A stretch of DNA of 17,875 nucleotides from Rhodosorus marinus CCMP1338. Its lineage: Eukaryota; Plantae; Rhodophyta. A model generated the notes under the pieces. That model did no database searches. It was given only the letters and a program-made list of their open reading frames with translations, and was not told the DNA's origin. Both the position numbers and the translations under genes were made by a program. Of the stretch, positions 1-17,875 are shown one piece after another. The stretch spans positions 1-17,875 of the forward strand of contig JAMWBK010000017.1 in the NCBI GenBank assembly GCA_029953675.1, read 5' to 3'. How positions within the stretch are numbered: the first letter of the stretch is position 1; each line of letters opens with the position of its first letter.

Positions 1-7
1 CGACACC

Positions 8-720
8 ATGGTTTCCTCCTTGGGGGTCGCCCCGTCTGAATTCCTATATGTGGACTTCACGGGCCCTCATGCCTGTTTTTTCTTGTTACTGACTCGGCTT
101 ACCAGTTCCTTCAATCGCTTGTAACCACTCCCTTCGCGCCCCAGCGCTCTGGCTCTGGCCAACATGATACTGAACTCGTCCTCATGTCTCTTTGTTTGTC
201 GAGTTCGATCGTTTTGACGCCGGCTGGGTTCCTCCGTCGGCCTTGCAAAACCTGGTTGCCTCGCAGGCTTCGGTTGTCGCGCTACACACTCATGCGGCGC
301 GGCTCTCGCGCATACAGGCGAGCCTCTTTCGCGTGTTTTCCTCCCTCGCGGGGTCCTCCGCACCGCGCTAGAGGCCTTCCTCTCCACTGAGGCCACCCTG
401 CTGGAAGCAAGCCCAATTCCTGCGTTTGACCCCTTCTGCCGCCGACTCCTGAGCACCCTTTTCCCTCCCCTCGCCCTGTCTCCGAGGCTCGTGACACCGA
501 CATGGCAGAAGCACCATCGGCCTCTCCGAATCCGCTGGCTCTGGACACCCTCAGCTCAAGACTCCGCTGCTGAAACCCTGTGTCTACTTTCTTCAGGTCT
601 TTTAGTTCCTTCCAAAAGTGCGCCCCCCACGTAAGCGTCGTGCGGCTCCTGAGCCTCCCTCCGAGGCACTCCCCTCCTCCGGATATTTGATCTGCCTTCC
701 CGGACTGAGGGGGAGGCCCG
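8..720 (+). pseudogene. Frameshifted ORF1 homolog of element 1
   Basis: From ATG at 8: MVSSLGVAPSEFLYVDFTGPHACF aligns by eye to ORF1 of element 7 (ALGIPSSYVAHVDFIASHACL). Frameshift in the T run near 77-83. A later PPRKRRAAPEP segment resembles the basic motif near the C-terminus of lineage B ORF1. The end coordinate is approximate. Confidence 0.6.
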
Positions 721-819
721 ATGTCTGGAGTCTTCCCTCCTCCGCGTGTGCGTATCGTCCCGGTTAACTCCCTCGTTTACCAGTGACCGCTCAGCCTGGC
801 ACATGAGCGTGTTCTCTCG

Positions 820-3800
820 TGGTTTTCGCACCTTGTCGCCTCCTACCCGGATTCCGGTTCCCTTCCCCTTTGTCGTCAGAGCACGGCTGTAACGGCTCCT
901 TCGTCGACTTCATAAGCTCCTCTAGGATTGGTGTTGATTTTCTCTGGCAGCAGGTCGCCGCGAACCCTTTCGCTGCTCTCTTCTTCGCTGGGAACTCTTG
1001 TTCTTTTTTTTCCCCGCCTCGTGCTCACCTCCTCTACCGTCCCCGGCAACCCACATCCTCGCCGGGTCCACCCTCGCCGAAAACTGCAAATGTTCCTTTT
1101 CCGGCGACTTTGAGGACCTCGAACGTCTTTATTTCGCTTCTTCTCTCCTCTTTTTTCTCCTAGTGCTCCTCAGCATTTAGGTCTTCTCGACAGAATCGGG
1201 CGATATGTCACGCGGTGGTAGCAGGCGGTAATCTGCGGCGGGCAGCCGGGATCCTCCAGCAGCGGCAACCTGTGGTTCCATACTCCGATGATCTTTCTTC
1301 ACCGCTCCGTTTGCTCTTTCCCTCGGAAGGCTCCCTTGGGACTCCTCGTTTGAATCAGTGTTGGAAGAGTACCGCGCCGCGCCACATCCCAGTGCGCGGT
1401 TAGTGGTCAATCTGGAGGCGGTGCGTGAGTTGGTTCATTATGCTCCGAAGGGCCGTTCTCCAGGGCCCTCGGGGCTGCGGGTGGAATATCTCCGTTTCTT
1501 AAGTGATGAAGGTTTGAAGGCGTTGGCGTTGGTGGTCGAAGCGCTTGTGAATGGTGATCCCCTGTGTGAGTGTGCGTGGTTCTTGGTCGGGCGTTCGCAG
1601 TTGTGTCTGCTTTCGAAGCCCAGCCACACGGCCTCGAGCCCTGCTATTCGCCCTATTGGCCTGGTTGAGGTGGTCCGCAAATTGGCGGCGCGATGGTTAG
1701 TGAAAATCCTGGTTCCCGAATCCCGCCGTTTCTTTGGGCACGTGCAGTTAGGCGTGGGCTATCGTGGTGGCTGTGAGTTGTTGTCTGTTTTACTCCGTTC
1801 CGGAAATGGCGTACTCCCCAGATGCTGGGCTCCTCTCTGTAGATTTTACCAATGCGTTCAACCGCGTCTCTCGTCCGGCTCTCATGCACGTGCTGCGCGA
1901 AGTCTATCCTGTAGGCTTTCCCTTTGTTAGTAGACTTTATTCTCCGCTTGGCCGTGGGGCTACCTATGACACCCTTGGCGCTTCCTCACACACGTTTGCG
2001 GCGCGCACTTTTAGGGTACAACAGGGTGATCCCTTGTCCCCTTTCCTACATGCCTGTGGACTACAACTCGTCTTGCTTTGTCTTCGCTCTGAATTCCCGC
2101 AGGTTCGTACGGTTGCATACCACGACGACGTGTGCCTCCTGGGGCCCCCCGATACTCTAGCGCTCGCTTATGATCGTCTCCGCTCCTTGGCTTCGCGGGT
2201 TGACTTGGAGGTTAATCATCACAAATCGTTCTACTGGGGAGGTGTAGCTGCACAAGAGCAGCAGGTACCTGCGTCGTTCCAGGATATTTGGAGACCGGAT
2301 GGTTTTGTCCACTTAGGCATCCCCTACGGGTCGCCGTCCTTCGTTGAAGGCGAGTTGCTGCAGCTCCTCGGTAAGCACAGACAGCTGGTTGCAGAGCTTC
2401 GACGGCTACCTCCGGGCTTTCTCCAGTGCTCGTTGTTGCTGTTTCGGTATTGTTGCAGTCAGCGGTTAACCTATTGGCTTCGCTCACTTCCAACTCATTG
2501 GGGCCGGTGGTTGGCCACTCGTGCGGATGCTGAAAGTTTCCGTGACCTGGGGTATTTTCTCGATGAAGAGCTGAGCGCTCTGTCAGGTAGGCCTCCCATT
2601 GCGATTGGGGGGACTGGGCCTCTGCAATCGTGTTGTGGTCCAACCTGCAGCCGCAGTAGGGGCCTGGGGAACCGCACTTCCCACTTTGAGCAGCTTGGGT
2701 ATCTCGAAGTTCCGCAATTTGATGGCGAGCCTCTCGCGGGGTGTCTTGCTTCCCAGCGTACCGGAAAGCGCCCAAGACTTGTTTCTGGAGCTCCAAACCG
2801 CCCTGAATTCCTGTACTAGTCTCCCCGAAACCGTTCAACCCCGTCTTCCTGACTGGCGAGCTGTATTTGACCGCTCTCGAGGCTCCGCCCCGGGGATTCG
2901 TCCTGCGCCTGAACCTGTTCTAGGGGAGATTGACCCAGTGGTTGCCGCAGAAGAAGAAGTTCCAGTTGATCCTCCTGATGATTCCCAGCGCGCTGGGAGC
3001 AGAGCTCAAGCACGCACGGATGCGCTGCAAAATATCCTTTCTTGGGACTTGCACCGTGCTGCATATGGCCGACTCCTCGCGCAGATGGTCTCATCTTCTC
3101 GCGCTCGCGCCCGCCTACGTAGTCTTGGAGGGGTTCTTAGCTCTCAGTGGCTCATGACCGTACCAGCCTTTCCGCCACTCACACTGTCGGATTTCGAAGT
3201 GCGTACTTCACTGCGCTTATACCTCGGCTTACATCAGCCCCCTTGGCCGTACGAGATGGGTTCGTCGTGCCCTCTCTGCTCTCAGACTGAAGACAACGCA
3301 GATTTTGGCGCCCAGCTGCTCGCTAGTTGCCCGGTGGTGAAAGGTGCTCGAACCCGCCGCCATACACGGATCTTGAACCTGTTATACCGGGAACTTCGGC
3401 CTATAGTCCGGCAAGCCGGTCTGGAAATCGAACGTGAGAAACCTTTACCCGTCGCGGACTTTCAAAATGATGAACGCCGTGTAGCCGACCTGGTGATCAC
3501 CTGTGACGACAGCCGCCGTACCACATACGTTGATCTTGCTGTTCCTAACCCTCAAGCTAGTCGTTATCTCCCGGCTGCGGGGGAGCGCCGTGGATCTGTC
3601 GCCGCCAGCATGAGACGCCGCAAAGAGATCAAATACGCGGGGGCTTTGTCTTCCCCTGGTGTTCGTGCTTCGGCACTAGCACATCGCTTGGTACCCCTGA
3701 TCATTGAGTGCTTTGGGTTCATAGACTCTGTTGGTTCTCGCTGGCTTCGGGAGTTGTTCCGCGAACGCCCTGACCGTCTTCAATCGTTGTTTACCCGCTT

Positions 3801-3867
3801 AAGTTTCCTGCTGTGGCGCATGAATGCCGCTTTGATGTTGGAGGCGCGAGTTCTTCGCCGCACTTAG
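820..3867 (+). pseudogene. ORF2 of element 1 (RT + zinc knuckle + RLE endonuclease), split by frameshifts
   Basis: Track ORFs 1358-1930, 1764-2819 and 2599-3867 join into one RT-RLE polyprotein with shifts near 1800 and near 2590 (the latter includes a short deletion relative to element 2). YHDD at 2118-2129. The start is uncertain. Confidence 0.9.
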
Positions 3868-3958
3868 TCTTTTTTTCCCCTCGGGGGTTTTGTTTTTTTT
3901 TTTCAACCTCCGATTAAACGATTCGTTTCGCAGTAAGCAGCTGCCCTGTAAAGCTTAC

Positions 3959-3976
3959 GGTTACGTTAGCCTGGGG
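3959..3976 (+). repeat. Junction/target motif, variant GGTTACGTTAGCCTGGGG
   Basis: One mismatch to the motif at 9228, 10168, 14102, 14601, 14907; sits immediately after the element 1 3' UTR. Confidence 0.9.
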
Positions 3977-4013
3977 TTTTCACGCCTTGCGTAGCGCTTC
4001 AGGCTTTGCAAAT
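3977..4013 (+). repeat. 37-bp near-direct repeat, copy 1 (copy 2 at 7727-7763); probable retroelement 3' UTR fragment
   Basis: TTTTCACGCCTTGCGTAGCGCTTCAGGCT is identical over 29 nt in both copies; 2 mismatches over 37 nt. Confidence 0.85.
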
Positions 4014-4110
4014 GAAGAAGAAGAAGAAATAAAGCCAAAGCGAATAAAGCCAATAAAATGATGACGGGCGAAATAAAAAATGAAAGTTTTCATGTGAAAA
4101 CAAGAAAAAC

Positions 4111-4235
4111 CAGAAAAACCGTTGGTGAAGACAAACCCCAGAAAAACCGTTGGTGAAGACAAACCTCAGAAAAACCGTTGGTGAGGACAAACCCCAGAAA
4201 AACCGTTGGTGAAGACAAACCCGAGAAAAACCGTT
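4111..4235. repeat. Minisatellite, 28-bp unit CAGAAAAACCGTTGGTGAAGACAAACCC, about 4.5 copies
   Basis: Units start at 4111, 4139, 4167, 4195, 4223 with single-base variants and no spacers. Confidence 0.95.
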
Positions 4236-4323
4236 CAAGTCTCTCTAAAGTCATGAAAACCCAAAACGGGTCTTTTAGGAGCAAAGCGTTTCTGAGGCAA
4301 AAAGAGTAAAAACCAGAATATCG

Positions 4324-4608: not shown

Positions 4609-4701
4609 GAGGATTGAACAAATTTGGTTAAATCAAGACTGAAAAAAAGAAGAGTCCGACGCTTGAAGTGTTCTCGTCGAAGATTTCGAACTATAGTAGC
4701 C

Positions 4702-6113
4702 ATGTTCGCCATGGGTAGAATCATCACGTTCCTTCTGTTAAGTCTGACGCTGCTGGTGACGGTGAGATCTACCGGAGCGGATTCTGCGGATTCAACGTGC
4801 TCTGATGAGCCGCAGTTTACACGCTTTGCTCCTGCTTCCAATCGCTTTATAGCGAATTTGCAAACCAAAAAAGGTTCTGTCGTCGCGACGATCACTATGG
4901 ATGTCGTGGCGAGGAACAACACAAACTGCTTTCTTGCGACGTTTACAGCTGCGGCATCGTCGAGCAGTCTGCTGAAGCTCAGGGCAGGAATCTTCACGAC
5001 AGCAGGGGATCTTCCCACCGGTATGAATAGGGTCACAAGGAGGAAGCTCGTTCCTCAACTCGACCCTTTGAGCAACCCCAGGAGCGAAATGTTCATCTGT
5101 CCCATGAATATGGTGCGGCGGAATACAGATTCTTGCTGTGGACTGCTTGAATTTTTAGCATTTGTCCAAATCCGTGTTGCTCGTTCGAGCGGTACCAAAA
5201 TTGTAACGGGGTATCTAACGCCGACTGGACGTACAAATCGGCCATGCCGAGTCCAAGACCCGGCGAACCCTTTCCGCTACGTCTGTACATTGGAAACCGT
5301 CTGTACACCGGAACCCACCTGCGAGTGTGCCCCGGGCACCTGCCGAGGAGAGGATGGGAGTTGCATTCTTATTAGTGACTTTTCTGCAAACTGTGCAAAT
5401 AATCAGGTGTGCCCACCTGCCCTTCTCCGTGCTCTCCCGTCGACCTTTTGGCGAAGCAGAAACAAGTCTGACCATGTCTCCCTGATTCGTTCCCCTCTGC
5501 TCATGTTTCGTATAGTTTGCTGCGGCGAACCCCGAGAACGAAGCGTGTGAATGCGCGGATCTTGAGTGCTCAGGATCGGAATGCATCGAAGACGGACAAT
5601 GCGTCGGAGCTAGAGGGTGGGGCCAGCAATGCCCTTCTGGCGAGGTATGTCCGTGGACTCTCAACCACAAGTAAACCGAACGGTAATTTACGTTCGTAGA
5701 TGTGGCTCAGAACAAATCTTTCTGTGTCCCGTTTTTGTATCAAGTTTGGAGCAGCGGATGATGCGGGGATATGTAGTTGCCAAGACACTTGTCCGCCCGG
5801 GAGATGTCTTGACGTCGTCAGCAAAGTTTGTGTGGGTCCTAATCCCGGCAATTGTCGCCAGAGTTCCGCGGTATGAGAGATTTGCAACTGGGTCATATTG
5901 CACAAATCGAATTACTCACAATAACTTGGGTATTCACACGGTTCACGCACATAGTTCCAATTCTTGGATCCAGATACGGGCTTTTGTCTTTGTTTGCAAG
6001 GCTGTAATAACTGTGCGCCGGGATCTGTACGTTTGTTTCCCCATTCTGACATCACGCGTGTTCGCCTTTCGAATTGCGATGGACTGCGTCAGTGTTCCTG
6101 TCACGAAAACTGA
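4702..6113 (+). CDS. Four-exon host gene for a putative secreted cysteine-rich protein (exons 4702-5406, 5516-5644, 5745-5870, 5955-6113)
   Basis: N-terminal hydrophobic stretch (MFAMGRIITFLLLSLTLLVTVRS) looks like a signal peptide. Three GT..AG phase-0 introns (donors GTGTGC, GTATGT, GTATGA) join Cys-rich exons in frame (129, 126, 159 nt), ending CSCHEN-TGA. Alternative in-frame acceptor at 5699; alternative start at 4711. Confidence 0.75.
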
Positions 6114-6404
6114 GAAAAAAAAACTAACATGTAATATGGATCTAATTGTCGTCATGTAGGTGCCCACACCGACGGCGGATAAGAGCCGGTGTGAATGTGT
6201 TTCCCAGATTGACCCGTGACCTGATCGTACTAGCCAATTTTCGCGAGAAAGTAAGAGCATGAATTTTCCTCAACGCAGAACGCGAATCTCTCCTGGACTT
6301 TACACATAGTCTGTAACACCCCACCGAGCTAGAAAAGTAAAGGAAAAGCTACACACGCTGCCGCTCACGCAAGGTTACTCAGCTCTCCCTTCACACCGCC
6401 TCCA

Positions 6405-7023
6405 TCACCGCCGCCTTGACGTCGATGGCCTACTACTTATCTATGCGGTGATGACGAACGGTAATGACGGGGCGAAGACGACTCCCTCAAAAACCATAAG
6501 ACTCGATCTGAACATCAGGGAGGTGTCACAGGGGACAGTGGCGCGCGAGTTCATCACGAATGCGATTATGGCGCAGAGTCCAATTCCCGCCCAAGGTAGA
6601 ACAGTGAAATAGTCCCATCCGATGCGTGAGGCTTGGCACAGACGTTGCATTCAGGGGGATTGATGGAGGCAGCAGCTGCATCGCCTGCGGGAAGCGCCTT
6701 AGACCAAAGAGCGAGCTTTCGAATACGAGCAAAAGTGCGGGAGTTGAGGCGGGAAGTTGTCCATCGCCTAGCCAGCGAGAGCTGCAGTTCCAGTTGATCC
6801 GTTGAGCTGGCGAGATCCTCAAGATGTTCGGCATTAGGCCCCGGGACACGCAGTATCCAGACGGCTCATAAAAGGGATTGCCAGCGGCATTATTCCGAAG
6901 CCCGCGGAGCCACGCGGCATAAGAAGCAATCGGGTGAATGCGAACGCTCGTAGCCAGGCCAAGCCCTCCCCACTTGCCAGGTAATCGAATTTGGGTTTTC
7001 ACTGTATTAGGTGAGAGGAGCAT
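6405..7023 (-). pseudogene. Decayed, internally deleted lineage-B-like retroelement fragment in inverted orientation
   Basis: QIRLPGKWGGLGLATSVRIHPIASYAAW matches QISLPCRWGGLGFATRARIQPIAFFSAW of element 4. CNVCAKPH (alternate frame) and FHCSTLGGNWTLRHNRIRDEL match the zinc knuckle. GSRLRPVI...AIDVK with stops matches the RLE of element 3. Confidence 0.85.
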
Positions 7024-7566
7024 TGGGGTTTTGTTTCTTTTTCGGTCACGAGCGTGTTCGTTTACGGGAAGCGCTTCCTTTGGTACGCCTTCCCCCCGTT
7101 TTTCAGGGGTGCGTCGTTTGCAATTGCAACTACTTCTGTCTTCCGGGTGAGAGTGTTGCGGGGCCTTTCCTATTTGGGTTGGGTGTGTCGATTATTCTCT
7201 CGTTGAGGTCTCATATTGGTGGTGCAACGTTTCCTTTGCGCTTTCCCTCAGGATGGTAGGGATATCTCCGCGCTCGACGGAGCCTCATCCCAAGGAGGCA
7301 CTGCCAGGTGGGGGACTCCGTGTTCGCCTCAGCTGCGGCACCTTTTCTTCCGAGGTTGACTTGGAGACCGCTTCTGGCACCCAGGCGCGTGCACTTATCT
7401 TCGTTGTCACCAGCCTGATAACGGCTGCGAGTGATCGTGGAGTGCTTCCTCAGCTCACCCAGAAGCTAGGTGGGCTGGAATCGGGGCCGCTGGCCAGGCC
7501 AAATTCAAATTCGGACGAGAATTTGAATTGCACCAGAGTGGCAGCGTTGGCTGAAGGCAGTCGGGT

Positions 7567-7767
7567 TTGGAGTGGCTGCGGAAATGTTTTGCTGAGCATC
7601 CTGTTGAATATTTGGAACTTTTGCGTCGTTTAAGCGTGTCTCTGTGGCGCTACTCGAGCAGCATGCTTGGTCAGGCGCGCCATAGGCGCCTGGGTTTGCA
7701 CGCTTCCCTACCTAGTTCTTAGTCCCTTTTCACGCCTTGCGTAGCGCTTCAGGCTATGCTAATAAAG
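7567..7767 (+). pseudogene. 3' remnant of another lineage-A-like element (C-terminus, stop 7720-7722, 3' UTR ending in AATAAAG)
   Basis: LEWLRKCFAEHPVEYLELLRRLSVSLWRYSSSMLGQAR aligns with element 1 SRWLRELFRERPDRLQSLFTRLSFLLWRMNAALMLEAR. Confidence 0.7.
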
Positions 7768-7994
7768 TCCACCCACTCTGCGACTAATCAGCGAACGTGA
7801 AGGGTTCGAACACCACGGCGTCGGATTGGGGACTGACAACTTTGTCCAAGCATCCTGCGAGCGAGTTTTGGCACGGCACAAGTCCACCCACTCTGCGACT
7901 AATCAGCGAACGTGAAGGGTTCGAACACCACGGCGTCGGATTGGGGACTGACAACTTTGTCCAAGCATCCTGCGAGCGAATTTTGGCACGGCAC
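7765..7994 (+). repeat. 115-bp tandem duplication at the 5' truncated end of element 2
   Basis: 7765-7879 equals 7880-7994 except one base (CGAGTTTT vs CGAATTTT); AAG begins both copies and the following sequence. Confidence 0.95.
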
Positions 7995-9222
7995 AAGCAA
8001 CTCACCGACGCCATTGAGCACCTACCCGACAGCATGCTGCAATCGGCCTGCTTGCTTTCCCGCTTTTGTGCCGGTCCCAGACTCAACTACTGGTTGCGCA
8101 GCCTGCCTCCAGCTTGGGGCTCGTGGATCGCGGCTAAAGCCGACGAAATGACCCTGCAACACTGGGGAACGCTCTTGGATGAGCCCCTCGATCTTGAAGC
8201 TGCTCCCGACAGGGACTTTATTCGTGCACAGATCGCTCTACCGTTGCGATTAGGGGGATTCGGCGTCGCTGACCGTGGGCTGGTATGCTCGCCAGCGGCG
8301 GTTGCCTCCTGGGCTACCACGCTGCGAACGTTGGTGACCTTCCAGATGCGAAGTGCCTGCCTCTTGGCTCGAGCTTTGACCAACGAGGATCCAGTGACCC
8401 TGCCGCCCCCGCTTTTGACAATTTATGATGGTCTTCAACACGCGTTCAGGAGGTGCAACGCCGTGCCGGACGCAAATCGGTCCCGCTTTCGTTCCTGGAG
8501 GGAGCTGTTATGGGGACGAGCTGAAGCGATTGAGGATTGTCCCCTCGACCGAGTTCTTGCCGATGACGGAGAGGCCAGCCCCGGGTCACCTGTTGCAGAC
8601 TACCCGTGTTTGAGCCGATTGTGGAGCTCCCGCACTGATGTGATTCAACATAGCCTCACCTGGGGCCAACACAGTGCCGCTCACACAGTCATGCTCAATT
8701 CTCCTCTCACGCCGCCTACCACTGCCGCTCGTCTCCGCGGCATGGGAGGCCACCTCTCGCACTTGTGTTTAACCACTCTACCGTCGTCATTGAGTCATCG
8801 TCTCGATGCTTTCCAGTTCCGTTCTGCCGCACGGATCTATCTCGGTTTGCCACAGGCTCCGTGGCACTCTAATCGGCCGTCTTTCTGTCAGGGATGTGAG
8901 AGCCGGATTGACGCTAGTGGCTACCACTTCCTGGGTTCCTGCGGACTGTTACGAGGTCTCCGTACGAGGCGTCACACTCGCCTCAAGTACATCCTCAGCG
9001 AATCTTTGACTCGGATAGGGCATACGGTTGAGGTTGAGTCGGAACTGCCCAGATCCATCTCGGACTCTGCACCGCCCCGTTGTATAGCCGATCTCCTCGT
9101 CTCCGACGCTGCTGCCAGACGCTCAACATATGTGGACCTTGCGATTACCTGCCCCGTGGCCAGCGCCCACCTCACCGCAGCCGCCCGCCGCCGGGGGGCC
9201 GCGGCTTCAGCCCTTCGAAGAG
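7765..9222 (+). mobile_element. Element 2: lineage A subfamily, truncated at both ends (late RT region, linker, zinc knuckle, first half of RLE)
   Basis: Open frame from about 7880: EGFEHHGVGLG, RLNYWLRSLP, QIALPLRLGGFG, CQGC...HFLGSC...RTRRH, IADLLV...YVDLAI; homology stops at ASALRR before the RLE lysine motif. Confidence 0.92.
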
Positions 9223-9248
9223 TCTGGGGTTACGTTAGTCTGGGGTAC
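9221..9248 (+). repeat. Junction motif in tandem: AGTCTGGGG TTACGTTAGTCTGGGG TAC
   Basis: About 1.5 contiguous units define a 16-nt period; fused directly to coding sequence of element 2. Confidence 0.93.
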
Positions 9249-10089
9249 CCAAAAACTCCTCTCCAACTGGAGTCACCGACGGGCATTCGAGGAAATGGTG
9301 GAGAACGCGGAGATCAGCGAGACGGCACGTGCGCGAATACGCTCCTGCAAGGGATCAGGAGGCGGTACTTGGCTGCGAGACTTGCCAATGAAACACGGAC
9401 GCGGCCTAAGTAGCGGAGAACTGAACCTGAGCCTTCGACAACTGTTGGGATTGCCCCTGCCGGGTGTACGAATACTTAGTACGTGTACGATATGTTCCCA
9501 ACCACACGACGCTGCAGGCATTCAACGCCTTCACCACTGCACCAGCTCTACCGGCAGTTGGACAATTCGGCATAACATGGTCAGGGACGCCCTGGCGACA
9601 GTGCTGAGACAATGGCGACTAGAAGTGACAATAGAACCGACCGGACACTACCAAGGCAGTCGGCTTCGGCCTGACATTCTAGCCCGACACCCACGAACAG
9701 GCAAGCTCTACGTGATCGATGTGAAGGTGACCTCGCCTTTGCAAAGAACACACCTCCACAAAGCGTCTTGGGAGACCGGGTATGCGGCACGGAAAGCGGA
9801 AAAGTTTAAAGAGTCCAAATACCGTGACAGTATCGGAGAACATAACGACGACATCTTCGTCCCCTTCTGCCTGGAAACATTTGGGCAGATGGGACAACAA
9901 GCGAGTGAGTTCCTCAAGGAAGCGACTATACACCTGGATCAGCGGGCAACGCAAGTAAGTGAGGCTCGGGCGATCTTGAACCGCACTTTGTGGAAAGGAA
10001 ACGCTATCCTTGCCACCCAGGCTCGTCGTGTCGACGAAGCAGACTATGACATCGTCCCTATCTTCGAACGTAGCCACACAACCCATTAG
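9247..10089 (+). CDS. C-terminal part of ORF2 (zinc knuckle + RLE), 5'-truncated
   Basis: CTICSQPH...HHC...RHN; RLRPDILARHP...YVIDVKVTSP...AEKFKESKY; FVPFCLETFG; stop TAG at 10087-10089. Confidence 0.85.
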   Translation, partial: TQKLLSNWSHRRAFEEMVENAEISETARARIRSCKGSGGGTWLRDLPMKHGRGLSSGELNLSLRQLLGLPLPGVRILSTCTICSQPHDAAGIQRLHHCTSSTGSWTIRHNMVRDALATVLRQWRLEVTIEPTGHYQGSRLRPDILARHPRTGKLYVIDVKVTSPLQRTHLHKASWETGYAARKAEKFKESKYRDSIGEHNDDIFVPFCLETFGQMGQQASEFLKEATIHLDQRATQVSEARAILNRTLWKGNAILATQARRVDEADYDIVPIFERSHTTH

Positions 10090-10167
10090 GGGTTTCTTTG
10101 CTGACCAATAGGATCCTTATTGCTTCTTAATGGGCTCCAATAGGGAGTTCTTCAGTAAAGTGTACGC
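9249..10167 (+). mobile_element. Element 3: 5'-truncated lineage B (subfamily B1) copy with intact 3' end
   Basis: Begins directly after the motif in mid-ORF2, ends with the 3' UTR ...CAGTAAAGTGTACGC before the next motif. Confidence 0.93.
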
Positions 10168-10185
10168 GGTTACGTTAGTCTGGGG
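10168..10185 (+). repeat. Junction/target motif GGTTACGTTAGTCTGGGG
   Basis: Exact motif between the 3' end of element 3 and the truncated 5' end of element 4. Confidence 0.95.
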
Positions 10186-10187
10186 CA

Positions 10188-10883
10188 ATTCCTCTTCTCC
10201 AAAGCGCAATCAGCCGGGGTGTGTTCCGGACTGGGATTTTCGGATCCTTTACCATGCGACACCCCGATCGACAGGTGAGCCTGTACACCGGGCACGGTTT
10301 AGAGGCGGATAACCTGCTGGGGTTCAACGAGCGGCAACGACTCGCCGGCGGAGATGTCAGGGCTCAAACGCTGAGACGAGCGATCGAGCAGATCATACGC
10401 ATCCGCGCGCGGCTGAGCCGTCGACATCTCTCGTTTACAACTCTCGCCCGAGTGCACGAGATGCTGGACCAACGGCTTGAAAAGTTACAAGCCCTTCAAC
10501 AGCAACCTGCGGTATCCAGGGAGAGCGCGGAACCCCTAACGACTGCAGCCGCACCAAACGCAGCCGCTGAAGCCTCGTCGTCTCCGGACGATGCACAGGC
10601 AGCCTGTGGGACTGTTGCCACTCAGGGTGACTCCGGTGGAACATCCCAAGTACCGCAGGATGTGGAAGAAGAGGACAATCCCCATGCGGAACTCTCGTGC
10701 AACTTGCCGGAACCTCCTCAACTTAAGCGCTCGCGCCGGTCTGCCAACGGATCTAGCACGGATGCAGAAATGACACCAGCTCCCCTCGACCCCACACCGA
10801 GCGAGAATGGACTACAACCTGAAACTGCAGCCAATACAAACCCGTCGGTTCAGCAGGAAGCGCAGGACAACGAGCAATCATAA
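10188..10883 (+). CDS. ORF1 C-terminal portion (5'-truncated) of element 4
   Basis: IPLLQSAISRGVFRTGIFGSFTMRHPDRQV is nearly identical to element 7 ORF1; acidic/Pro-rich tail; TAA at 10881-10883. Confidence 0.85.
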   Translation: MPLLQSAISRGVFRTGIFGSFTMRHPDRQVSLYTGHGLEADNLLGFNERQRLAGGDVRAQTLRRAIEQIIRIRARLSRRHLSFTTLARVHEMLDQRLEKLQALQQQPAVSRESAEPLTTAAAPNAAAEASSSPDDAQAACGTVATQGDSGGTSQVPQDVEEEDNPHAELSCNLPEPPQLKRSRRSANGSSTDAEMTPAPLDPTPSENGLQPETAANTNPSVQQEAQDNEQS

Positions 10884-13800
10884 TGCCGTCCAGACGCAGG
10901 GGACGTAAACGCCCACGAGAAGAGCCTCTGTTCTTCTCTGACCGGGAGGCCTGGATTTGCCGCTGGAACGCTTTCGTAGCTGAGATCACGGAGGAGGGGA
11001 GGCATTGGACGCGCATCACACATTGCCCGGTGCCCACACGACACTTCGTGCCCCGAGCACACGTTTCTACATGGAGCCGGCTTCTTCGGGCTGCCCTCGA
11101 GCTTTCTCTGGACGCGACAGCACCTCCATTAGCGAGCCTGCTTCTCGTCGGCCTTCCGGGTCTGGTCCTGGGCCACTCCACCCTTGACACAGGGGTACAG
11201 GTCGCACATGTACTAGAAGGAGAGTTCCAGCGGGTCTGGACGGCCCTTGAGGAGAAAGCCGCCTCAATGAAACCCCCACCTACACCACACGGTGCCGAAG
11301 ACGTTCGTCGACGAGTCGATGGCCGCCGCAAACAAGCACTTAAACTAGCACGACTCGGCCGCCTCTCGGATGCTGCAAGAAGACTCGAGGCCACCGAAAT
11401 GGCGCCTTTCACAGCGGCTACCTGGCGGCAACTACAACAGCTCTTTCCGAGCCCCGCCAGTGTGGATTCACCGGTGGAGATTGTGGAAGCCCTCCAAGGC
11501 CTACTCACGACGGACAACGACACACTGAAGAGGCGGTGGGATCCAAAAATGGCTGCCGACGAAGGCCTCCTCTCAATCGTGGCACGACTACCTCAAGGGA
11601 CGAGCCCTGGACCGAGTGGAATGCGCGCGGAACATTTGCAAGGGGCGAACCAACAGACTCAGGTAGCACTGATTCGGGTCTTGCGCCAACTCGCCACCGC
11701 GCCCGGGCGATTCTCACCCCTTCTGCTACGAGCCTTGCGTAGCAGTAGACTTCTGCCTTTCTCGAAGCCAGCACAGGGGGGTAACTCCCAGGCCAAGGCA
11801 GGGATCCGCCCAATAGGCGTGCCGGAGGTCCTACGCAAAGTGGCAACTCAGTGGGCGCTGCGAGCGGTGATGGACCGGGTCCGCGAGCTGTTGGTGCCGT
11901 TGCAGCTGGGAATCGGGGTCAGCGGTGGCTGTGAACGGTCACTGCACGCCATCCAGGCCCACCTGTCATGTGAACCAGACTCGGTTGCACTTCGACTGGA
12001 CCTCGAGAACGCCTTTAACCGCATTGACAGGCGAATTGCCAAGAAACTGGTGGCCCAGCACTTCCCTGAGCTCACAGCGGTGTATAGGCTCGGATATGGA
12101 GGCGATGGGGAAACACCGACGCTTTGTGGATGGCGGACGACGCAAGAAGACAACCACCTGCACAAGGACAGACTGACGCTGCAAGCAGAAACCGGAGTAC
12201 AACAAGGCGACCCTTTAGGTCCGGTGCTACATGCGCTCTCCCTGGCCCCTTTTCTCAAGGCACTCAGCAACAAGTTTCAGGGAGTCACGATCGTCGCCAT
12301 CCATGACGACATCACTCTGGTCGGCGCATTGCCTATATTGAAGGAGGCTCTCCAATGGGGACAGACCCTGCTACCGTGCCTTGGAGCCCGCCTGCAGCTC
12401 AGCAAATGCAGCCTTTATGGTCGATCCCTCACCACTACACGCTTGGTGAACCGTGCGATTCCCGGCGTGCAAGTGACTAGGGAAGGCCTCACAATCCACT
12501 CCATCCCCATCGGCACTCGGCAGTACATCGAGCACGAGTGTAGACGGCTGCAGAACAAACACGAGACGCTGTTCAAGGAGATTTCGAGCCTGCCAACCGA
12601 TGAACTGCCTATCCAGCTTGCGCTTTACAGGTATTGCGCTGAAACGAGGTTGGATTACACCTTGCGATGCCTTGCCTACCCGTTTGGACGAGCTCTGGCC
12701 AGGGAAGCGGACAGTATGAGCCGATACCACTTAGAGGTCTTGTTTGGTGGCCTCTGCACGACGGCCTTGGTCGAGGATGAGCTGATACACCCGGTCAACG
12801 AGCAGATTTCGTTGCCCTGCCGATGGGGCGGATTGGGGTTCGCGACCCGTGCAAGAATACAGCCGATTGCGTTCTTCTCGGCCTGGGCGCAGACCCTGAG
12901 AGACCATGCGGGTCAGTGGCCCTATATAACGGAGGTGGAGCGACAGGTCAGGCAAGGTGGCGACATACACATCAGCCACCTAGGCCGACTGCAGGTGTCA
13001 ACGGAGACGATCGGTGAGCAAATCCGCGCGTCTAGTCGTGCTATAGAGCGGAGACTGTGCCCAGACACGGCGCCGCGGATCCGGAGACTGGCCAAGCTGC
13101 CCGAATTGAGAGACGAAGCCGCACCTGAAGTAGCGGACTCCCCTCGCGATTGGAACCATGGTTCAATACAACAAACCCTCTCTAGGGAGGCACACCATCG
13201 CGCGTTCCAACGTTTGGTCGGCAACGAGGGCGTTTCGCATGAACACCGTGCAAGAATCCGATCGGCGGCCGGCTCGGGTTCGGGGGTATGGCTGCGGGAA
13301 CTACCGTTGCTAGAGCCGAGAAAGCTGGACTCACAGGAATTGCAGGTAAATGTTCGACAACTGCTGGGGCTGCCGATTCCGGGGTTGCGGACAACGGAGC
13401 AGTGCACCAGTTGCCGTAGGAAACATGGCCCAAATGGGGTGCAACGATTTCAACACTGTCCAACATCGACGGGACTATGGCAGAGACGGCACGACGAGCT
13501 CTGTACGGAGCTAGGGAGATGGCTCAACCGATGGAATTTTCTTGACATACAGCAAGAACCGCAGAGGTATTTTGAGAATTACCAGCTGCGACCAGATATC
13601 GTGGCGACCCATCCAAAGACCTTTCAAAAAGTACGCGATCGATGTGACGGTGATTTCACCGCTACAGGAAAAGTACATAAGGCGTGGCAGTGCAGAAAAC
13701 GGGTATGCAGCGAAACTGGCGGAGAACTACAAGCTCGCGCACTATAAAGAGGCGATGAGTGTGGAAAAGCCCGAGGAGAAGTTCATCCCGATCGCGATAG

Positions 13801-14021
13801 AGACCTTTGGGCGGAGCGGGAGGTTGACGCAAGACTTTTTGCGGGACAGTTGTAAACACTTGTTGCATCGAGATGAGGAGCTGAGGGATGCACGATCCCA
13901 GTTAAACAGGATCCTATGGCAGGGCAACGCGGCGATTGCGCTTGGCGCTCTACGTGCGGACCAGTTGGAGAACCCACTGGTTCCTGTTTTTTCTTTTGAA
14001 CGTAGCATGAGACCCCGGTAG
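10883..14021 (+). CDS. ORF2 of element 4: reverse transcriptase + zinc knuckle + RLE endonuclease, one +1 frameshift near 13626
   Basis: Track ORF 10883-13747 continues in 13542-14021 after an extra A in CAAAAAG. Motifs: GTSPGPSG, IRPIGVPE, LDLENAFN, GVQQGDPLGP, AIHDD (12296-12310), CTSC...HC...RH, RPDI...YAIDVTV...AENYKLAHY. Confidence 0.95.
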
Positions 14022-14101
14022 CGGGGTTGTTGTGAGTGATTCCCTAGATAGCAATCGGCTTAGTGTTACGTCGCATTAGGCGACTGCCCAATAAAGCTCA
14101 C

Positions 14102-14118
14102 GGTTACGTTAGTCTGGG
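14102..14118 (+). repeat. Junction/target motif GGTTACGTTAGTCTGGG followed by T and 13 A
   Basis: Motif directly after the element 4 3' UTR; A run at 14120-14132. Confidence 0.93.
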
Positions 14119-14119
14119 T

Positions 14120-14600
14120 AAAAAAAAAAAAATGCGCTGGATGTGACGGTGGTGTCACCATTACAGGGAAAATATTTGCGGCGGAGCCAAGATGATAGCG
14201 GATACGCGGCGAGAGCTGCGGAGAAGTGGAAAATCGCTCACTACAAAGAAGCGATGGTGATCGAGAAACCGGATGATAAGTTCATCCCGATAGCAATAGA
14301 GACGTTTGGGCGTACGGGGCAAATGGCACAGGAGTTCCTCCGGGACAGCTGCAAGCACTTACTGCATAGGAGTGAGGAGCTGAGAGACGTGAGATCCCAG
14401 ATAAACCGGCAACTATGGCGAGGTAACGCAGAGATAGCATTAGGCGCTTTGCGCGTGGACCAGCTGGAGAATCCGCTGGTACCTGTTTTTTCTTTTGAAC
14501 GTAGCATGAGACCCCGGTAGCGGGGTTCCAGTAAGTTTTTCCCTAGATAGGATTAGACGTAGTGTTGCGCTGCAGTAGGCAGCTGCCCAGTAAAGCTTAC
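14120..14600 (+). mobile_element. Element 5: short 5'-truncated B2-related copy (RLE C-terminal half + 3' UTR)
   Basis: LDVTVVSPLQ...FIPIAIETFG...FSFERSMRPR is a diverged paralog of the element 4 C-terminus; stop at 14520. Confidence 0.93.
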
Positions 14601-14618
14601 GGTTACGTTAGTCTGGGG
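14601..14618 (+). repeat. Junction/target motif GGTTACGTTAGTCTGGGG
   Basis: Exact motif between elements 5 and 6. Confidence 0.95.
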
Positions 14619-14906
14619 TTTGGGCAGATGGGACAACAAGCGAGTGAGTTCCTCAAGGAAGCGACTATACACCTGGATCAGCGGGCAACGCAAGTAAGTG
14701 AGGCTCGGGCGATCTTGAACCGCACTTTGTGGAAAGGAAACGCTATCCTTGCCACCCAGGCACGTCGTGTCGACGAAGCAGACTATGACATCGTCCCTAT
14801 CTTAGAACGTAGCCACACAACCCATTAGGGGTTTCTTTGCTGACCAATAGGATCCTTATTGCTTCTTAATGGGCTCCAATAGGGAGTTCTTCAGTAAAGT
14901 GTACGC
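14619..14906 (+). mobile_element. Element 6: 288-bp 5'-truncated copy of subfamily B1
   Basis: Matches 9880-10167 with two substitutions seen by eye. Confidence 0.95.
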
Positions 14907-14957
14907 GGTTACGTTAGTCTGGGGTTAGTCTGGGGGTACAGTTACGTTAGTCTGGGG
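14907..14957 (+). repeat. Irregular tract of junction-motif units (telomere-like)
   Basis: GG TTACGTTAGTCTGGGG TTAGTCTGGGGG TACA GTTACGTTAGTCTGGGG. Confidence 0.92.
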
Positions 14958-15020
14958 TGACGGGTTTGGACGGCTTTGTTTGTGAAAAACGACGGAAAAA
15001 GGTGATAAAAAGTTACAAGT

Positions 15021-16612
15021 ATGATTGTGAAGGAGGTACGCGGGCCGTACCCCGAGCCTCTTGTGATCGCGGGCCCACACACCTCGGGTACCCGCGAAAT
15101 GGAGAGGGCGAAAGAGCTGCTACAAGAGCAGCAGCAGCAGCAGCAGCAACAGCACCAGTATAGGGGAGCAGAACAGGAGGCAGAGAGGAATGCAGAACAG
15201 GGTGCAGCGGAGCAGGCCACAGCAGACCCAGCTGTCGCCTTTCTCCACCAACTGCAGAGCTACGACCACTGCTATACCGCCCTGGGAATCGGCCAGTCGG
15301 ACATCGCCGACTTCTACCAGGCCGCCTTCAACCTCTATTCCCGCATCAACTGCTCAAAAGAACTTCAATCAGTGACAGGACGTCTGAATGAGCTCGCCAA
15401 AAAACCGCATATGTGGCAAGACGGACGAGCCACTACGACCCCGCCTCAACCCCCGCAGCAGCACCCGCGGACGGCGGCGGTCAATCAACATGCGGCAGAA
15501 CCCATCATCAATCAACTTGCGGAGGGGACAGGTGTCCTTGCCTCACTGGACTATGCCACGGCCTTCCCGGTTGCCGGTATCAGCAGCACACGGCCAACGT
15601 ACGCTCAGAGGACTGCCCAAAGTACTCCAGCTCGAGAATCAGAGGCTCAACTCCGACCAGCCGGGCGCCCGGGCCCACAGAGCCAGCAGGCAGCGCTACG
15701 ACAGTTGCACGCCACTGTGGGAGGGTCCTCCTGGGGACCTGAGACCAAGCCGGTACTGGCGACCCTGAGGAATGTAAGACCGCCACGGATGGACGAGGTA
15801 GCCCCATCGGATTTCACCACGGTCCTTTGCAGAGCCTTGGGGATTCCGAGCTCTTATGTGGCGCACGTGGACTTCATCGCTTCCCATGCGTGCTTACTCT
15901 GCCATCCGGACGCGATTCCGATTCTACAAAGCGCCATCTCTCGGGGCGTTTTCAGGACGGGCATCTTCGGTTCGTTCACCCAGAGACACCCCGATCGGCA
16001 AGTGACTCTCTACACGGGCCAGGCACTGGATACAGACAACCTGTTGGGCTACAATGAACGTCAGCTCATTGCCCCAGCGAATATCGGGGCTCAGACCCTG
16101 AAACGGGCGATTGAACAGACTATCCGGATCCGCGCGAGACTCCGCAGAAGGCAACTCTCGTTCAACACACTCGCAGCGATACACGAGTACCTGGAGAGCA
16201 GACTCGGAGCCCTACAAGCCACACAACGTACTCCAACGGTACCCGGGGAGAGCGCGGAACCCCCAGCGCCTGCAGCCGCCACGAACGCAGACCCTGAAGC
16301 CTCGTCCCTTCCAGGGGATGTACAGGCAGACCGTGGGAGAGTTGACGCCTCGGTTGAGACCAGTGCGACTTCCCAAGTACCTGAGAACGCAGCACACGAA
16401 GACAATCCCCATGCGGAGCTCCTCTGTGCAACCTTCCGGAGCCACCTCAACAGAAGCGCTCGCGAGTGGCCGCCGATGGCACCGGACCGGATACTGAGAT
16501 GACTCCGGCAGCCGTGGAGACTCCACAGGATACCACTGGGACACAGGTTGCCGTTGACGGCAACCATCACGCGATGGACACGCAGGAGAGCCAGGAAAAC
16601 CCAGCGCAATAA
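15021..16612 (+). CDS. ORF1 of element 7 (about 530 aa, unknown family), one frameshift near 16420
   Basis: Track ORF 15021-16502; after the shift the alternate frame reads CNLPEPPQQKRSR (as in element 4) and ends at TAA 16610-16612. PolyQ, central conserved block, disordered tail. Confidence 0.85.
15129..15152 (+). repeat. (CAG)6CAACAG polyglutamine tract in ORF1
   Basis: Read directly; encodes Q8. Confidence 0.9.
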
Positions 16613-17875
16613 TGCCGAGCAGACGTAGGGGAATCAAACGACGCCGCGAAGAGCCTCTTTTCTTCTCGGATCGTCAAGACTGGATCAGGCGGTGGAGCGT
16701 CTTCGTCGACGACGTCACGGAAGGAGGCAGGCAGTGGACGCGCCTTACACACTGCCCGGTTCCCACACGGCGATTTGTGCCACGCGCCCAGGTTCACACA
16801 TGGAGCTGCCTCTTCCGTGCTGCATTAGAGCTCTCTATGGACAGCACCGCACCAGCAAACGCCAGCCTGCTTCTTGTCGGACTTCCAGGCCTTGTCCTCG
16901 GACACTCTGCACTTGATGTTGGCATTCAGGTATCGCATGTGCTTGAAGGAGAATTCTCTACGGTCTGGAGCGCTCTAGAGGACAAGGCGTCTATGCTGTC
17001 GCGTACTACCGCACCGCAAGGAGCTGAAGCGGTTCGACGCAAACATCTCGGGCGCCACAAGCGAGCGCTGAAACTAGCACACCTTGGCCGCCTTTCAGAC
17101 GCAGCTCGGAGCCTACAGGCCACCGAAATGGCACCTTTTACCGCGGCTACGTGGAGACAACTACAAGCGCTCTTTCCCAACCCGGCGGAAGGTGACTTAC
17201 CAGACGAGATTGCACACGCACTGCAATCTTTGCTCGCTCTGAATACCGAAACACTAAAGCGGCGGTGGGATTCAAGAAAAGCGGCCGACGAGGGCCTCAT
17301 GTCGATCGTGGCACGTCTTCCTCAGGGCAAGAGCCCAGGCCCTAGCGGTCTCCGAGCGGAACACCTCCAAGGTGCAACCCAACAGACGCAAGTGGCGTTG
17401 ATTCGTGTATTGCGACAACTGGCGACCGCTCCTGAGAAATTTTCCCCGGCTCTGACCCGCGCCCTTCGCAGTAGTCGACTCCTGCCGTTCACGAAGCCTA
17501 ACAAGGGTTCAGTGCCGCAGGAGCATCCCGGAGTTCGCCCTATCGGAGTGCCAGAAGTTTTGCGCAAGGTAGCAACGCAATGGACTCTTCACGCGGTTAT
17601 GGACAGGGTGCATGAGCTCCTGGTGCCCTTACAACTGGGTATAGGAGTAAGTGGCGGGTGCGAACGCTCGCTTCACGCGATCCAGGCCCATTTGTCATGC
17701 GAACCCGATTCGGTGGTCCTTCGCTTAGACCTTGAGAATGCCTTTAATCGCATCGACCGACGCCTTGCCAAGCAACTGGTGGACGAACACTTGCCGGAGC
17801 TTGCACCAGTGTATAGACTTGGCTATGGAAGCGACAACGCGGACTCACCGACGCTCTGTGGCTGGCGATCTTCCT
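16612..17875 (+). CDS. ORF2 N-terminal part of element 7 (to RT motif LDLENAFN), partial; frameshift in T run near 16660
   Basis: MPSRRRGIKRRREEPL, then open to the window end after a one-base shift: GKSPGPSG, VRPIGVPEV, QLGIGVSGGCE, LDLENAFN. Missing from the ORF track, probably because it has no stop inside the window. Confidence 0.9.
   Translation, partial: MPSRRRGIKRRREEPLFFSDRQDWIRRWSVFVDDVTEGGRQWTRLTHCPVPTRRFVPRAQVHTWSCLFRAALELSMDSTAPANASLLLVGLPGLVLGHSALDVGIQVSHVLEGEFSTVWSALEDKASMLSRTTAPQGAEAVRRKHLGRHKRALKLAHLGRLSDAARSLQATEMAPFTAATWRQLQALFPNPAEGDLPDEIAHALQSLLALNTETLKRRWDSRKAADEGLMSIVARLPQGKSPGPSGLRAEHLQGATQQTQVALIRVLRQLATAPEKFSPALTRALRSSRLLPFTKPNKGSVPQEHPGVRPIGVPEVLRKVATQWTLHAVMDRVHELLVPLQLGIGVSGGCERSLHAIQAHLSCEPDSVVLRLDLENAFNRIDRRLAKQLVDEHLPELAPVYRLGYGSDNADSPTLCGWRSS

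Follow-up and report, generated by a model that had tools for sequence, protein, structure and literature searches.

The 17,875-bp contig JAMWBK010000017.1 of the red alga Rhodosorus marinus CCMP1338 (assembly GCA_029953675.1), analysed over its whole length and referred to here as the window, carries a young copy of a retrotransposon lacking long terminal repeats (a non-LTR element), of a family that we call C (7768..9223, + strand). The copy breaks off inside its endonuclease domain and passes, through the three nucleotides AGT, into the 3' tail sequence of a second non-LTR family, T. We tentatively favour the view that this joint is a microhomology junction coupled to retrotransposition, formed without telomerase; judged from the sequences, its chances fall somewhat short of even. 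An initial annotation of the contig had read the same site as the scar of a broken element that was healed by telomere repeat addition and then invaded by another element.

The R. marinus assembly was produced from Oxford Nanopore Technologies (ONT) reads with NextDenovo and Pilon. JAMWBK010000017.1 is one of its four contigs shorter than 40 kb; it is unplaced and consists almost entirely of repeats. In the genome authors' RepeatMasker table, LINE/CRE elements account for 9% of the 31-Mb genome (PMC10250338). The window was dissected by self-comparison, by translation and by comparison with two further R. marinus loci located via protein look-ups, namely L048, an internal cluster of transposable elements (TEs) on contig 12 (1.16 Mb; 352-373 kb), and L050, on contig 7 (2,212,799 bp; 2,186,696-2,207,983), which stops 4.8 kb before the contig end. 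Counts of motif runs and of T contexts cover the window, L048 and L050, about 60 kb of R. marinus DNA. Three CRE-like non-LTR families, B, C and T, were resolved in the window, each with a reverse transcriptase (RT) and a C-terminal endonuclease. Left of position 9223, TE and gene DNA are mixed and lie in mixed orientation; right of it extends a one-way array of T copies, inside which the contig ends at 17875.

The truncation of the C copy was established with six intact paralogs from L048 and L050 (95-99% identity). These read CTTCGAAGAGT followed by TAAGGAACG at the breakpoint, where the window reads CTTCGAAGAGT followed by CTGGGGTTACG; the complete sequence at 9205-9262 is CTTCAGCCCTTCGAAGAGTCTGGGGTTACGTTAGTCTGGGGTACCCAAAAACTCC. 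Beyond this point, the intact paralogs run on from CTTCGAAGAGT into TAAGGAACGACGG (in the longer form, from GCCCTTCGAAGAGT into TAAGGAACGACGGTATGC in 6/6), with 89 more codons (VKERRYAES...LPSY), a TAG stop and a 3' untranslated region (UTR) of ~45 nt ending in AATAAAG. The window copy instead continues after 9223 as CTGGGGTTACGTTAGTCTGGGG. It is missing ~315 nt at its 3' end and has neither a stop codon nor a UTR, and the missing 315 nt were not found in the window. Up to 9223, the copy matches L048 5496-6260 at 98.8% over 765 nt without gaps, and it matches L050 16302-17640 at 97.8% over 1340 nt. The break lies past both conserved (catalytic-type) Asp residues, and the conserved K..KY motif and the last core strand would have come immediately after it, as placed by a protein alignment described below (A2). 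The six continuing paralogs, together with an R2-type fold match, bear out the initial annotation, which had described its second element as 3'-truncated in the middle of the endonuclease and lacking a 3' UTR.

The intact copies read AGAGT/TAAGG and the window reads AGAGT/CTGGGG, while the tail motif of T is TT-AGT-CTGGGG. The C copy and the motif unit thus have 3 nt in common, AGT (9221..9223, + strand), and the true breakpoint lies somewhere within them. The short overlap noted in the initial annotation is therefore present, but as AGT instead of AG, because C-family identity reaches 9223. The repeat does begin mid-unit, in register with this short seed. CTGGGG (9224..9229, +), the remainder of the partial unit, comprises the sole bases that could be pure repeat addition. 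It leads into GTTACGTTAGTCTGGGG (9229..9245, +), a 17-nt block that matches the 3' end of every T copy exactly. A 5'-truncated element follows, as had been stated: the T copy that starts at 9246.

This block is the conserved end of family T. Every T copy ends in GTTACGTTAG(T/C)CTGGG(G), about 20 nt past an AATAAA or AGTAAA signal, with GGG/GGGG variation among the tails. Four T subfamilies differ up to the G of GTTACG (CTTACG, CTCACG, GTACGCG; GATACA in L050), and the block does not vary among them. The window contains the 17-mer GTTACGTTAGTCTGGGG seven times, always on the + strand, against an expectation of 0.01; the motif has no copy in L048 and one in L050. A run of more than two motif units was found in none of the three loci. 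Of the complete T 3' ends in the window, seven in number, six lack a following free unit; behind the other stands a single 11-nt unit (14925-14935). Likewise, 8/11 T pieces stand directly behind a T block with no free unit between.

Short pieces of T tail were also detected elsewhere: the junctions at 3928 and 14936 have 49 and 22 nt, respectively, and in L050 some 100 nt lie where the T region has its inner edge. All three hold T-specific UTR and are thus not telomerase products. The 49-nt piece (3928..3976, +) is 5'-truncated, ends in GTTACGTTAGCCTGGGG and shows 94% identity to 14572-14621; it is joined to the intact 3' end of a family-B copy. Five B paralogs in L048 (96-97% identity, same terminal base) end 49 nt before the end of the piece and have differing, unrelated flanks, and assignment of the segment GCAG...CCTGGGG (3928-3976) to the B copy as its own tail was rejected on these grounds. 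Next to it lies a family-C 3' tail piece (TTTTCACGCC...AATGAAG; 93% identity to 7727-7767), followed by degenerate AATAAAGCC repeats (3977..4060, +; repeat unit AAAGCCAAT in Tandem Repeats Finder (TRF)) and homologous to L050 18496-18579. We considered the 41-nt block TTTTCACGCC... as a 5' end and rejected this, since paralogs show it to be a family-C 3' tail. The region 3928-4060 is thus a chimeric stack in which an intact B 3' end, a 49-nt T tail, a 41-nt C tail with AATAAAGCC repeats and host DNA succeed one another. Such a stack fits either a single event with successive template jumps or a series of abortive insertions.

Family C behaves likewise with a tail that is not telomeric. Apart from the 41-nt tail piece at 3977, AGTAAAGTCC (three times) and AATAAAGCC are reiterated after its tail. 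At L050 18528-18616, a C tail is followed by three AGTAAAGTCC units, two AATAAAGCC units and AAAAACCAG-type repeats, which vary in number and are non-telomeric. In L048, a C tail passes directly into a 5'-truncated B copy; insertion beside existing tails is thus general in this genome. The truncated C copy itself shows a further irregularity at its other end, where its first 115 nt are tandemly duplicated (7765-7997; 99%), starting exactly at the junction with the preceding C tail. The same segment is single in the L050 paralog (16302-16415). The duplication looks like the result of template re-copying by an RT or of duplication in the assembly. Finally, the initial annotation had suggested testing whether other 3'-truncated copies are capped by the repeat; two 3'-truncated copies without a cap are present, one of family T (L050 13174) and one of family B (L048 7606).

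The short T-tail pieces at other junctions, the invariant block, the abutting T copies and the lack of any repeat run point to a retrotransposition-coupled junction, as do the 115-nt duplication, the chimeric stack at 3928-4060, the uncapped 3'-truncated copies and the similar behaviour of family C. From these features we infer the order of events and the kind of enzyme that made the joint. T RNA would end in GTTACGTTAGTCTGGGG(T), about 20 nt past its AATAAA/AGTAAA signal, and T copies would insert directly behind an existing T tail block, building one-way head-to-tail arrays. The T reverse transcriptase would often leave very short, 5'-truncated tail copies or switch templates. It is established for RTs of R2 type with a restriction-endonuclease-like (REL) domain that they jump between templates, form variable 5' junctions and leave short 5'-truncated copies. 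On this model, 9221-9245 may consist of two tail pieces (9 nt, then 16-17 nt) ahead of a 940-nt T copy, with the outermost piece joined via AGT to an internal position of the young C copy, either in its DNA or in an RNA template. A C-rich template is needed if the broken top strand is to be extended by G-rich sense sequence, so that a T RT copying sense RNA could not have healed the left-hand fragment; if telomerase had no part, the joint must be a 5' junction, a template switch or a repair event. Three routes could be envisaged: an off-target or nested insertion, with the other half of the C copy beyond the contig end (17875); 5'-end joining in which target DNA upstream was lost; or a switch of template into RNA of family C.

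Several observations weigh against this model. The polarity is exactly what telomerase extension of the top strand needs, while retrotransposition predicts either polarity, and R2-type enzymes switch to an internal RNA site less typically than they jump from end to end. The motif is telomere-like (TTAG...GGGG; compare Yarrowia TTAGTCAGGG), and a host target could be what keeps the block strictly invariant. On the 2.2-Mb contig 7, a T copy with its sense strand outward is found 13-16 kb from the end, and the CRE clade includes several telomere-targeting lineages (PMC12857005). The lost 3' portion of the C copy did not turn up, since the contig stops within the array.

Chromosome healing by telomerase, the explanation put forward initially, is possible but rather unlikely. 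A break or erosion inside the C copy would have left a terminal AGT, with which the telomerase template paired before adding repeats of the TTAGTCTGGGG type (or of the 16-nt type GTTACGTTAGTCTGGG); repeat-specific T elements would have inserted later, pushing the tract outward. The site looks as such a scar should, with an abrupt stop, some 315 nt of a young C copy missing, and a G-rich repeat that prolongs the 3'-ending strand in register with the AGT seed. In Magnaporthe, seeds of 1-4 nt were recorded at 19/24 de novo telomere additions (PMC7367193), a range into which 3 nt falls. If the unit is the 16-nt block, 9221-9245 amounts to 1.5 perfect units. It counts against healing that the seed is followed by no more than 6 nt before a block that matches the T tails exactly. 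The setting is compatible with healing as well: the one-way T array has its inner edge at the junction, the DNA to the left being ordinary TE/gene DNA in mixed orientation, and T is absent from the internal cluster L048 and present in L050 past the last housekeeping genes. Red-algal telomere motifs are unusual and mostly undescribed. However, the motif is only a candidate host telomere repeat, and the roughly 60 kb covered contain no tract longer than two units. A free unit is absent behind six of the seven complete T 3' ends, whereas MoTeR and FoTeR copies have 0.5 to >20. T-tail pieces sit on non-T DNA elsewhere with T-specific UTR that is beyond telomerase, the non-telomeric family C also reiterates its tail, and in L050 C copies lie farther out than the T copy. 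The polarity and the seed of the initial healing proposal therefore stand, but they do not show the mechanism, and the context (a T-tail-identical block and no tract) argues against it.

Known telomeric and site-specific elements come closest to those of the window. MoTeR1 and MoTeR2 of Magnaporthe oryzae and the FoTeRs of Fusarium oxysporum are, like T, non-LTR elements with an REL endonuclease that form one-way head-to-tail arrays with many 5'-truncated copies; the arrays of these fungi lie near chromosome ends, as those of T may. Members of the CRE clade are site-specific or telomeric (PMC12857005), and truncated MoTeRs capped by de novo telomere repeats at 1-4-nt seeds have been documented (PMC7367193). 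MoTeRs and FoTeRs differ from T in that the repeats around them are proven telomere repeats of the host and free units separate or follow the copies, 0.5 to >20 in MoTeR arrays and 3-7 after each FoTeR 3' end (PMC7367193, PMC12857005), whereas T copies abut without units. They also differ in polarity: their sense strand is C-rich and their 5' ends point toward the chromosome end, while the sense strand of T is G-rich and its 3' ends would face the end.

SART1 of Bombyx mori resembles T in that its sense strand lies on the G-rich (TTAGG) strand, and the 3' end of its RNA is used for precise priming on the repeat; unlike T, it has an endonuclease of the apurinic/apyrimidinic (AP) type and a poly(A) tail, and long TTAGG tracts flank it. 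R2 and CRE/SLACS/CZAR elements have the domain order of T, an RT and then a CCHC motif with a PD-(D/E)xK endonuclease, and the model of the T C-terminus matches R2 structures only. Their targets are rRNA or spliced-leader genes, whereas the recurrent target of T is its own 17-nt tail block. Variable 3' ends of short units made by the element's own RT are known from the I factor, (TAA)n, and from CR1-type elements (8-nt repeats), as in family C with (AGTAAAGTCC)n and family T with one or two TTAGTCTGGGG units; the T unit differs in being G-rich and telomere-like, with a fixed GTTACG ahead of it. Overall, the elements resemble R2/CRE-type site-specific retrotransposons, and by analogy the arrays are like those of MoTeR, FoTeR or SART. 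Tracts of host repeat flanking the copies, as expected of an element inserted in telomeres, were not found. With regard to chromosome ends, T was absent from L048 and lay 13-16 kb from the contig 7 end, sense outward, in L050, a comparison of two loci only; within the window, a T-tail piece at 3928 lies outside the array.

A plain deletion appears improbable. The C copy would then have stood upstream of T-tail DNA, and microhomology-mediated end joining between two AGT sites would have removed the C 3' end with the intervening DNA. An overlap of 3 nt is typical for microhomology repair, the left region is visibly rearranged (the inverted fragment at 6415-7010 and other truncated copies), and C and T tails adjoin at 3928-4017; yet one end of the deletion must land by chance inside a tail unit of 11-17 nt, and we found no independent trace of the earlier arrangement. 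Very improbable is an artefact joining reads from different repeat copies: this is one of four contigs below 40 kb, made almost wholly of repeats of the kind that occupies 9% of the genome, and it shows an ORF2 frameshift and GGG/GGGG tail differences, but the joint is a unique C-to-T transition with an in-register partial unit, not a long shared repeat of the kind where assemblers collapse, and both flanks are 98-99% identical to genuine family members.

It is unlikely, to about the same degree as healing, that all parts of the telomeric interpretation hold together, namely that TTAGTCTGGGG (or the 16-nt GTTACGTTAGTCTGGG) is the telomere repeat of R. marinus, that T is a telomere-specific CRE-clade retrotransposon with its 3' end outward, and that 9221-9229 records healing by telomerase. 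Were this true, the polarity of T would be opposite to that of MoTeR, FoTeR and HeT-A, and neither a telomeric retrotransposon nor the healing of a chromosome would have been documented before in red algae, a group in which standard telomere assays failed on three rhodophyte classes (PMC3622300). If the motif is the Rhodosorus telomere repeat, the contig would show how red-algal chromosome ends are built and repaired, and healing, once confirmed, would matter moderately to highly for the study of red-algal telomeres. If it is not, the contig clearly exemplifies how retrotransposons with an REL endonuclease target their own tails and give rise to very short abortive copies and to chimeric tails. 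This would be useful for annotation and for understanding why such regions break assemblies, and would not surprise specialists.

The motif was also compared with outside sources. Rfam and tRNA scans of the window returned nothing, and the tail block is thus not a recognisable piece of an RNA gene (rRNA, snRNA or spliced leader). A metagenome scan for two motif units 0-6 nt apart gave 45 matches, all unrelated (mostly bacterial hairpin-like sites, and two short 12-mer arrays). A literature string search with all motif rotations, extended to yeast telomere papers, returned primer coincidences only; among known repeats, Yarrowia TTAGTCAGGG comes nearest. The B and C UTRs contain TTAGTC, which was considered as an ancestral form of the T motif and rejected, because the TAG there is the stop codon of the open reading frame (ORF). 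Near the end of contig 7, the inner edge of the T region is preceded at L050 10236-10275, immediately ahead of the T tail fragment, by TTACGTCCGGGG TTACGTGCGGGA GCCGGGGTTGAG; this could represent motif-like units that have decayed, or belong to the hairpin region of the T 3' UTR.

The C-terminal domain of these elements is an REL endonuclease, as modelled from family T, and the mid-endonuclease position of the break is correct in this light. The AlphaFold (AF2) model of the T C-terminus has a pLDDT of 76, with 85-96 in the core. In a fold search of the PDB, the top seven matches were all R2 proteins (E 4e-8 to 3e-4), followed by restriction-endonuclease-like folds; a PDB sequence search with the endonuclease region gave no match. 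Alignment A2, which combines the T C-terminus, family B and eight distant homologues, shows conservation of C82, C85, C100, R110-H111, D145, D160 and Y194. The RT was recognised by Pfam RVT_1 at 1764-2819 (E 2e-7) and in ORF2 10883-13747 (E 5e-9), and its PDB sequence matches were L1 and R2 RTs. A protein search with T ORF2 retrieved only unnamed metagenome proteins in uninformative context, and database proteins reach at most 27% sequence identity to T elements. The CRE clade label rests on the LINE/CRE category (9%) in the genome authors' RepeatMasker annotation, not on an RT tree made here.

The array to the right of the junction comprises five T copies from 9246 to the contig end, all on the + strand and all except the last clearly 5'-truncated. 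The first (9246..10185; element 3 of the initial annotation) retains its endonuclease C-terminus intact, along with the stop codon, the 3' UTR and the tail block, and shows 47% amino acid identity to 13169-13534 and beyond. The second (10186..14119) is ~955 nt shorter at its 5' end than the last and contains ORF1 (10221-10883) and ORF2 (10883-13747). ORF2 has one frameshift in the endonuclease (13640-13660; this is the longest internal T copy), which is either a real mutation or an ONT homopolymer error. The tail block of this copy is followed by an A-run at 14120-14132; the tail reads GGGT and then 13 A, some of which belong to the 5' end of the next copy. Two 3' fragments follow, 14133..14618 (+; 76% identity to the 3' end of the preceding copy) and 14619..14924 (+; 99% identity to 9880-10185). 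At 14925..14957 (+), the free 11-nt unit TTAGTCTGGGG (14925-14935) precedes the 22-nt tail piece GTACAGTTACGTTAGTCTGGGG (14936-14957), which comes from another T subfamily; its TACAGTTACG... tail recurs on a T fragment at L050 10330-10360. The last copy (14958..17875, +) has the longest 5' end, shows 70% identity to 10185-12135 and runs off the contig end.

To the left, the window opens with a CRE-like family-B element (1..3927, +; element 1 of the initial annotation), which has an RT (RVT_1) and an REL endonuclease, its 5' end being cut by the contig start. Its ORF stops at 3865-3867 (+), and the copy has the canonical 3' end, GATTAAACGATTCGTTTC. The host gene NDN08_000999, encoding a hypothetical membrane-associated protein, lies at 4702..6262 (+), as given by the gene model on the contig and a 99% match to the NCBI R. 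marinus protein; the ORF at 4624-5547 has 99% identity to it. Its paralog in L048, NDN08_004883 (44% identity), is likewise the only called gene in that 20-kb cluster of B and C elements, which lie in both orientations.

Upstream of NDN08_000999, TRF identified a 28-bp tandem repeat of 4.5 copies (4083-4250). Its minus strand contains TCTGGGGTTTGTCT, a 13/14 match to the two-unit motif junction TCTGGGGTTAGTCT, which may be due to chance. The repeat region has AAAAACCAG repeats in common with the A-rich stretch after the C tail at L050 18589-18616.

An inverted fragment of an REL-endonuclease element occupies 6415..7010 (-), detected by tblastn with T ORF2 and the E4 C-terminus (ORF 6526-7023, -). 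No tail block lies near it, and its presence means that the contig is not purely head-to-tail. It is followed by an older family-C-related unit (7029..7767, +) with the 5' end TTTCTTTTTCGG and a C tail ending in AATAAAG (83-87% identity to C tails in L048 and L050), directly before the young C copy (element 2 of the initial annotation), which is 5'-truncated as well. The 5' end of the older unit recurs at L050 13172 with 93% identity. The units at 7029-7767 and L050 13172-13706 represent a ~740-nt form with the common 5' end TTTCTTTTTCGGTC that contains only the C endonuclease C-terminus and the tail, and this form may be a non-autonomous derivative. In L050, it stands directly after a T copy truncated in the RT.

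The ORF1 of the last T copy (15021-16502; 493 aa) contains a polyglutamine run and no Pfam domain. It shows 82% identity to R. marinus NDN08_004843, a paralog with a spliced gene model that is carried in GenBank as a host protein, indicating that some transposon ORFs escaped masking in the published annotation.

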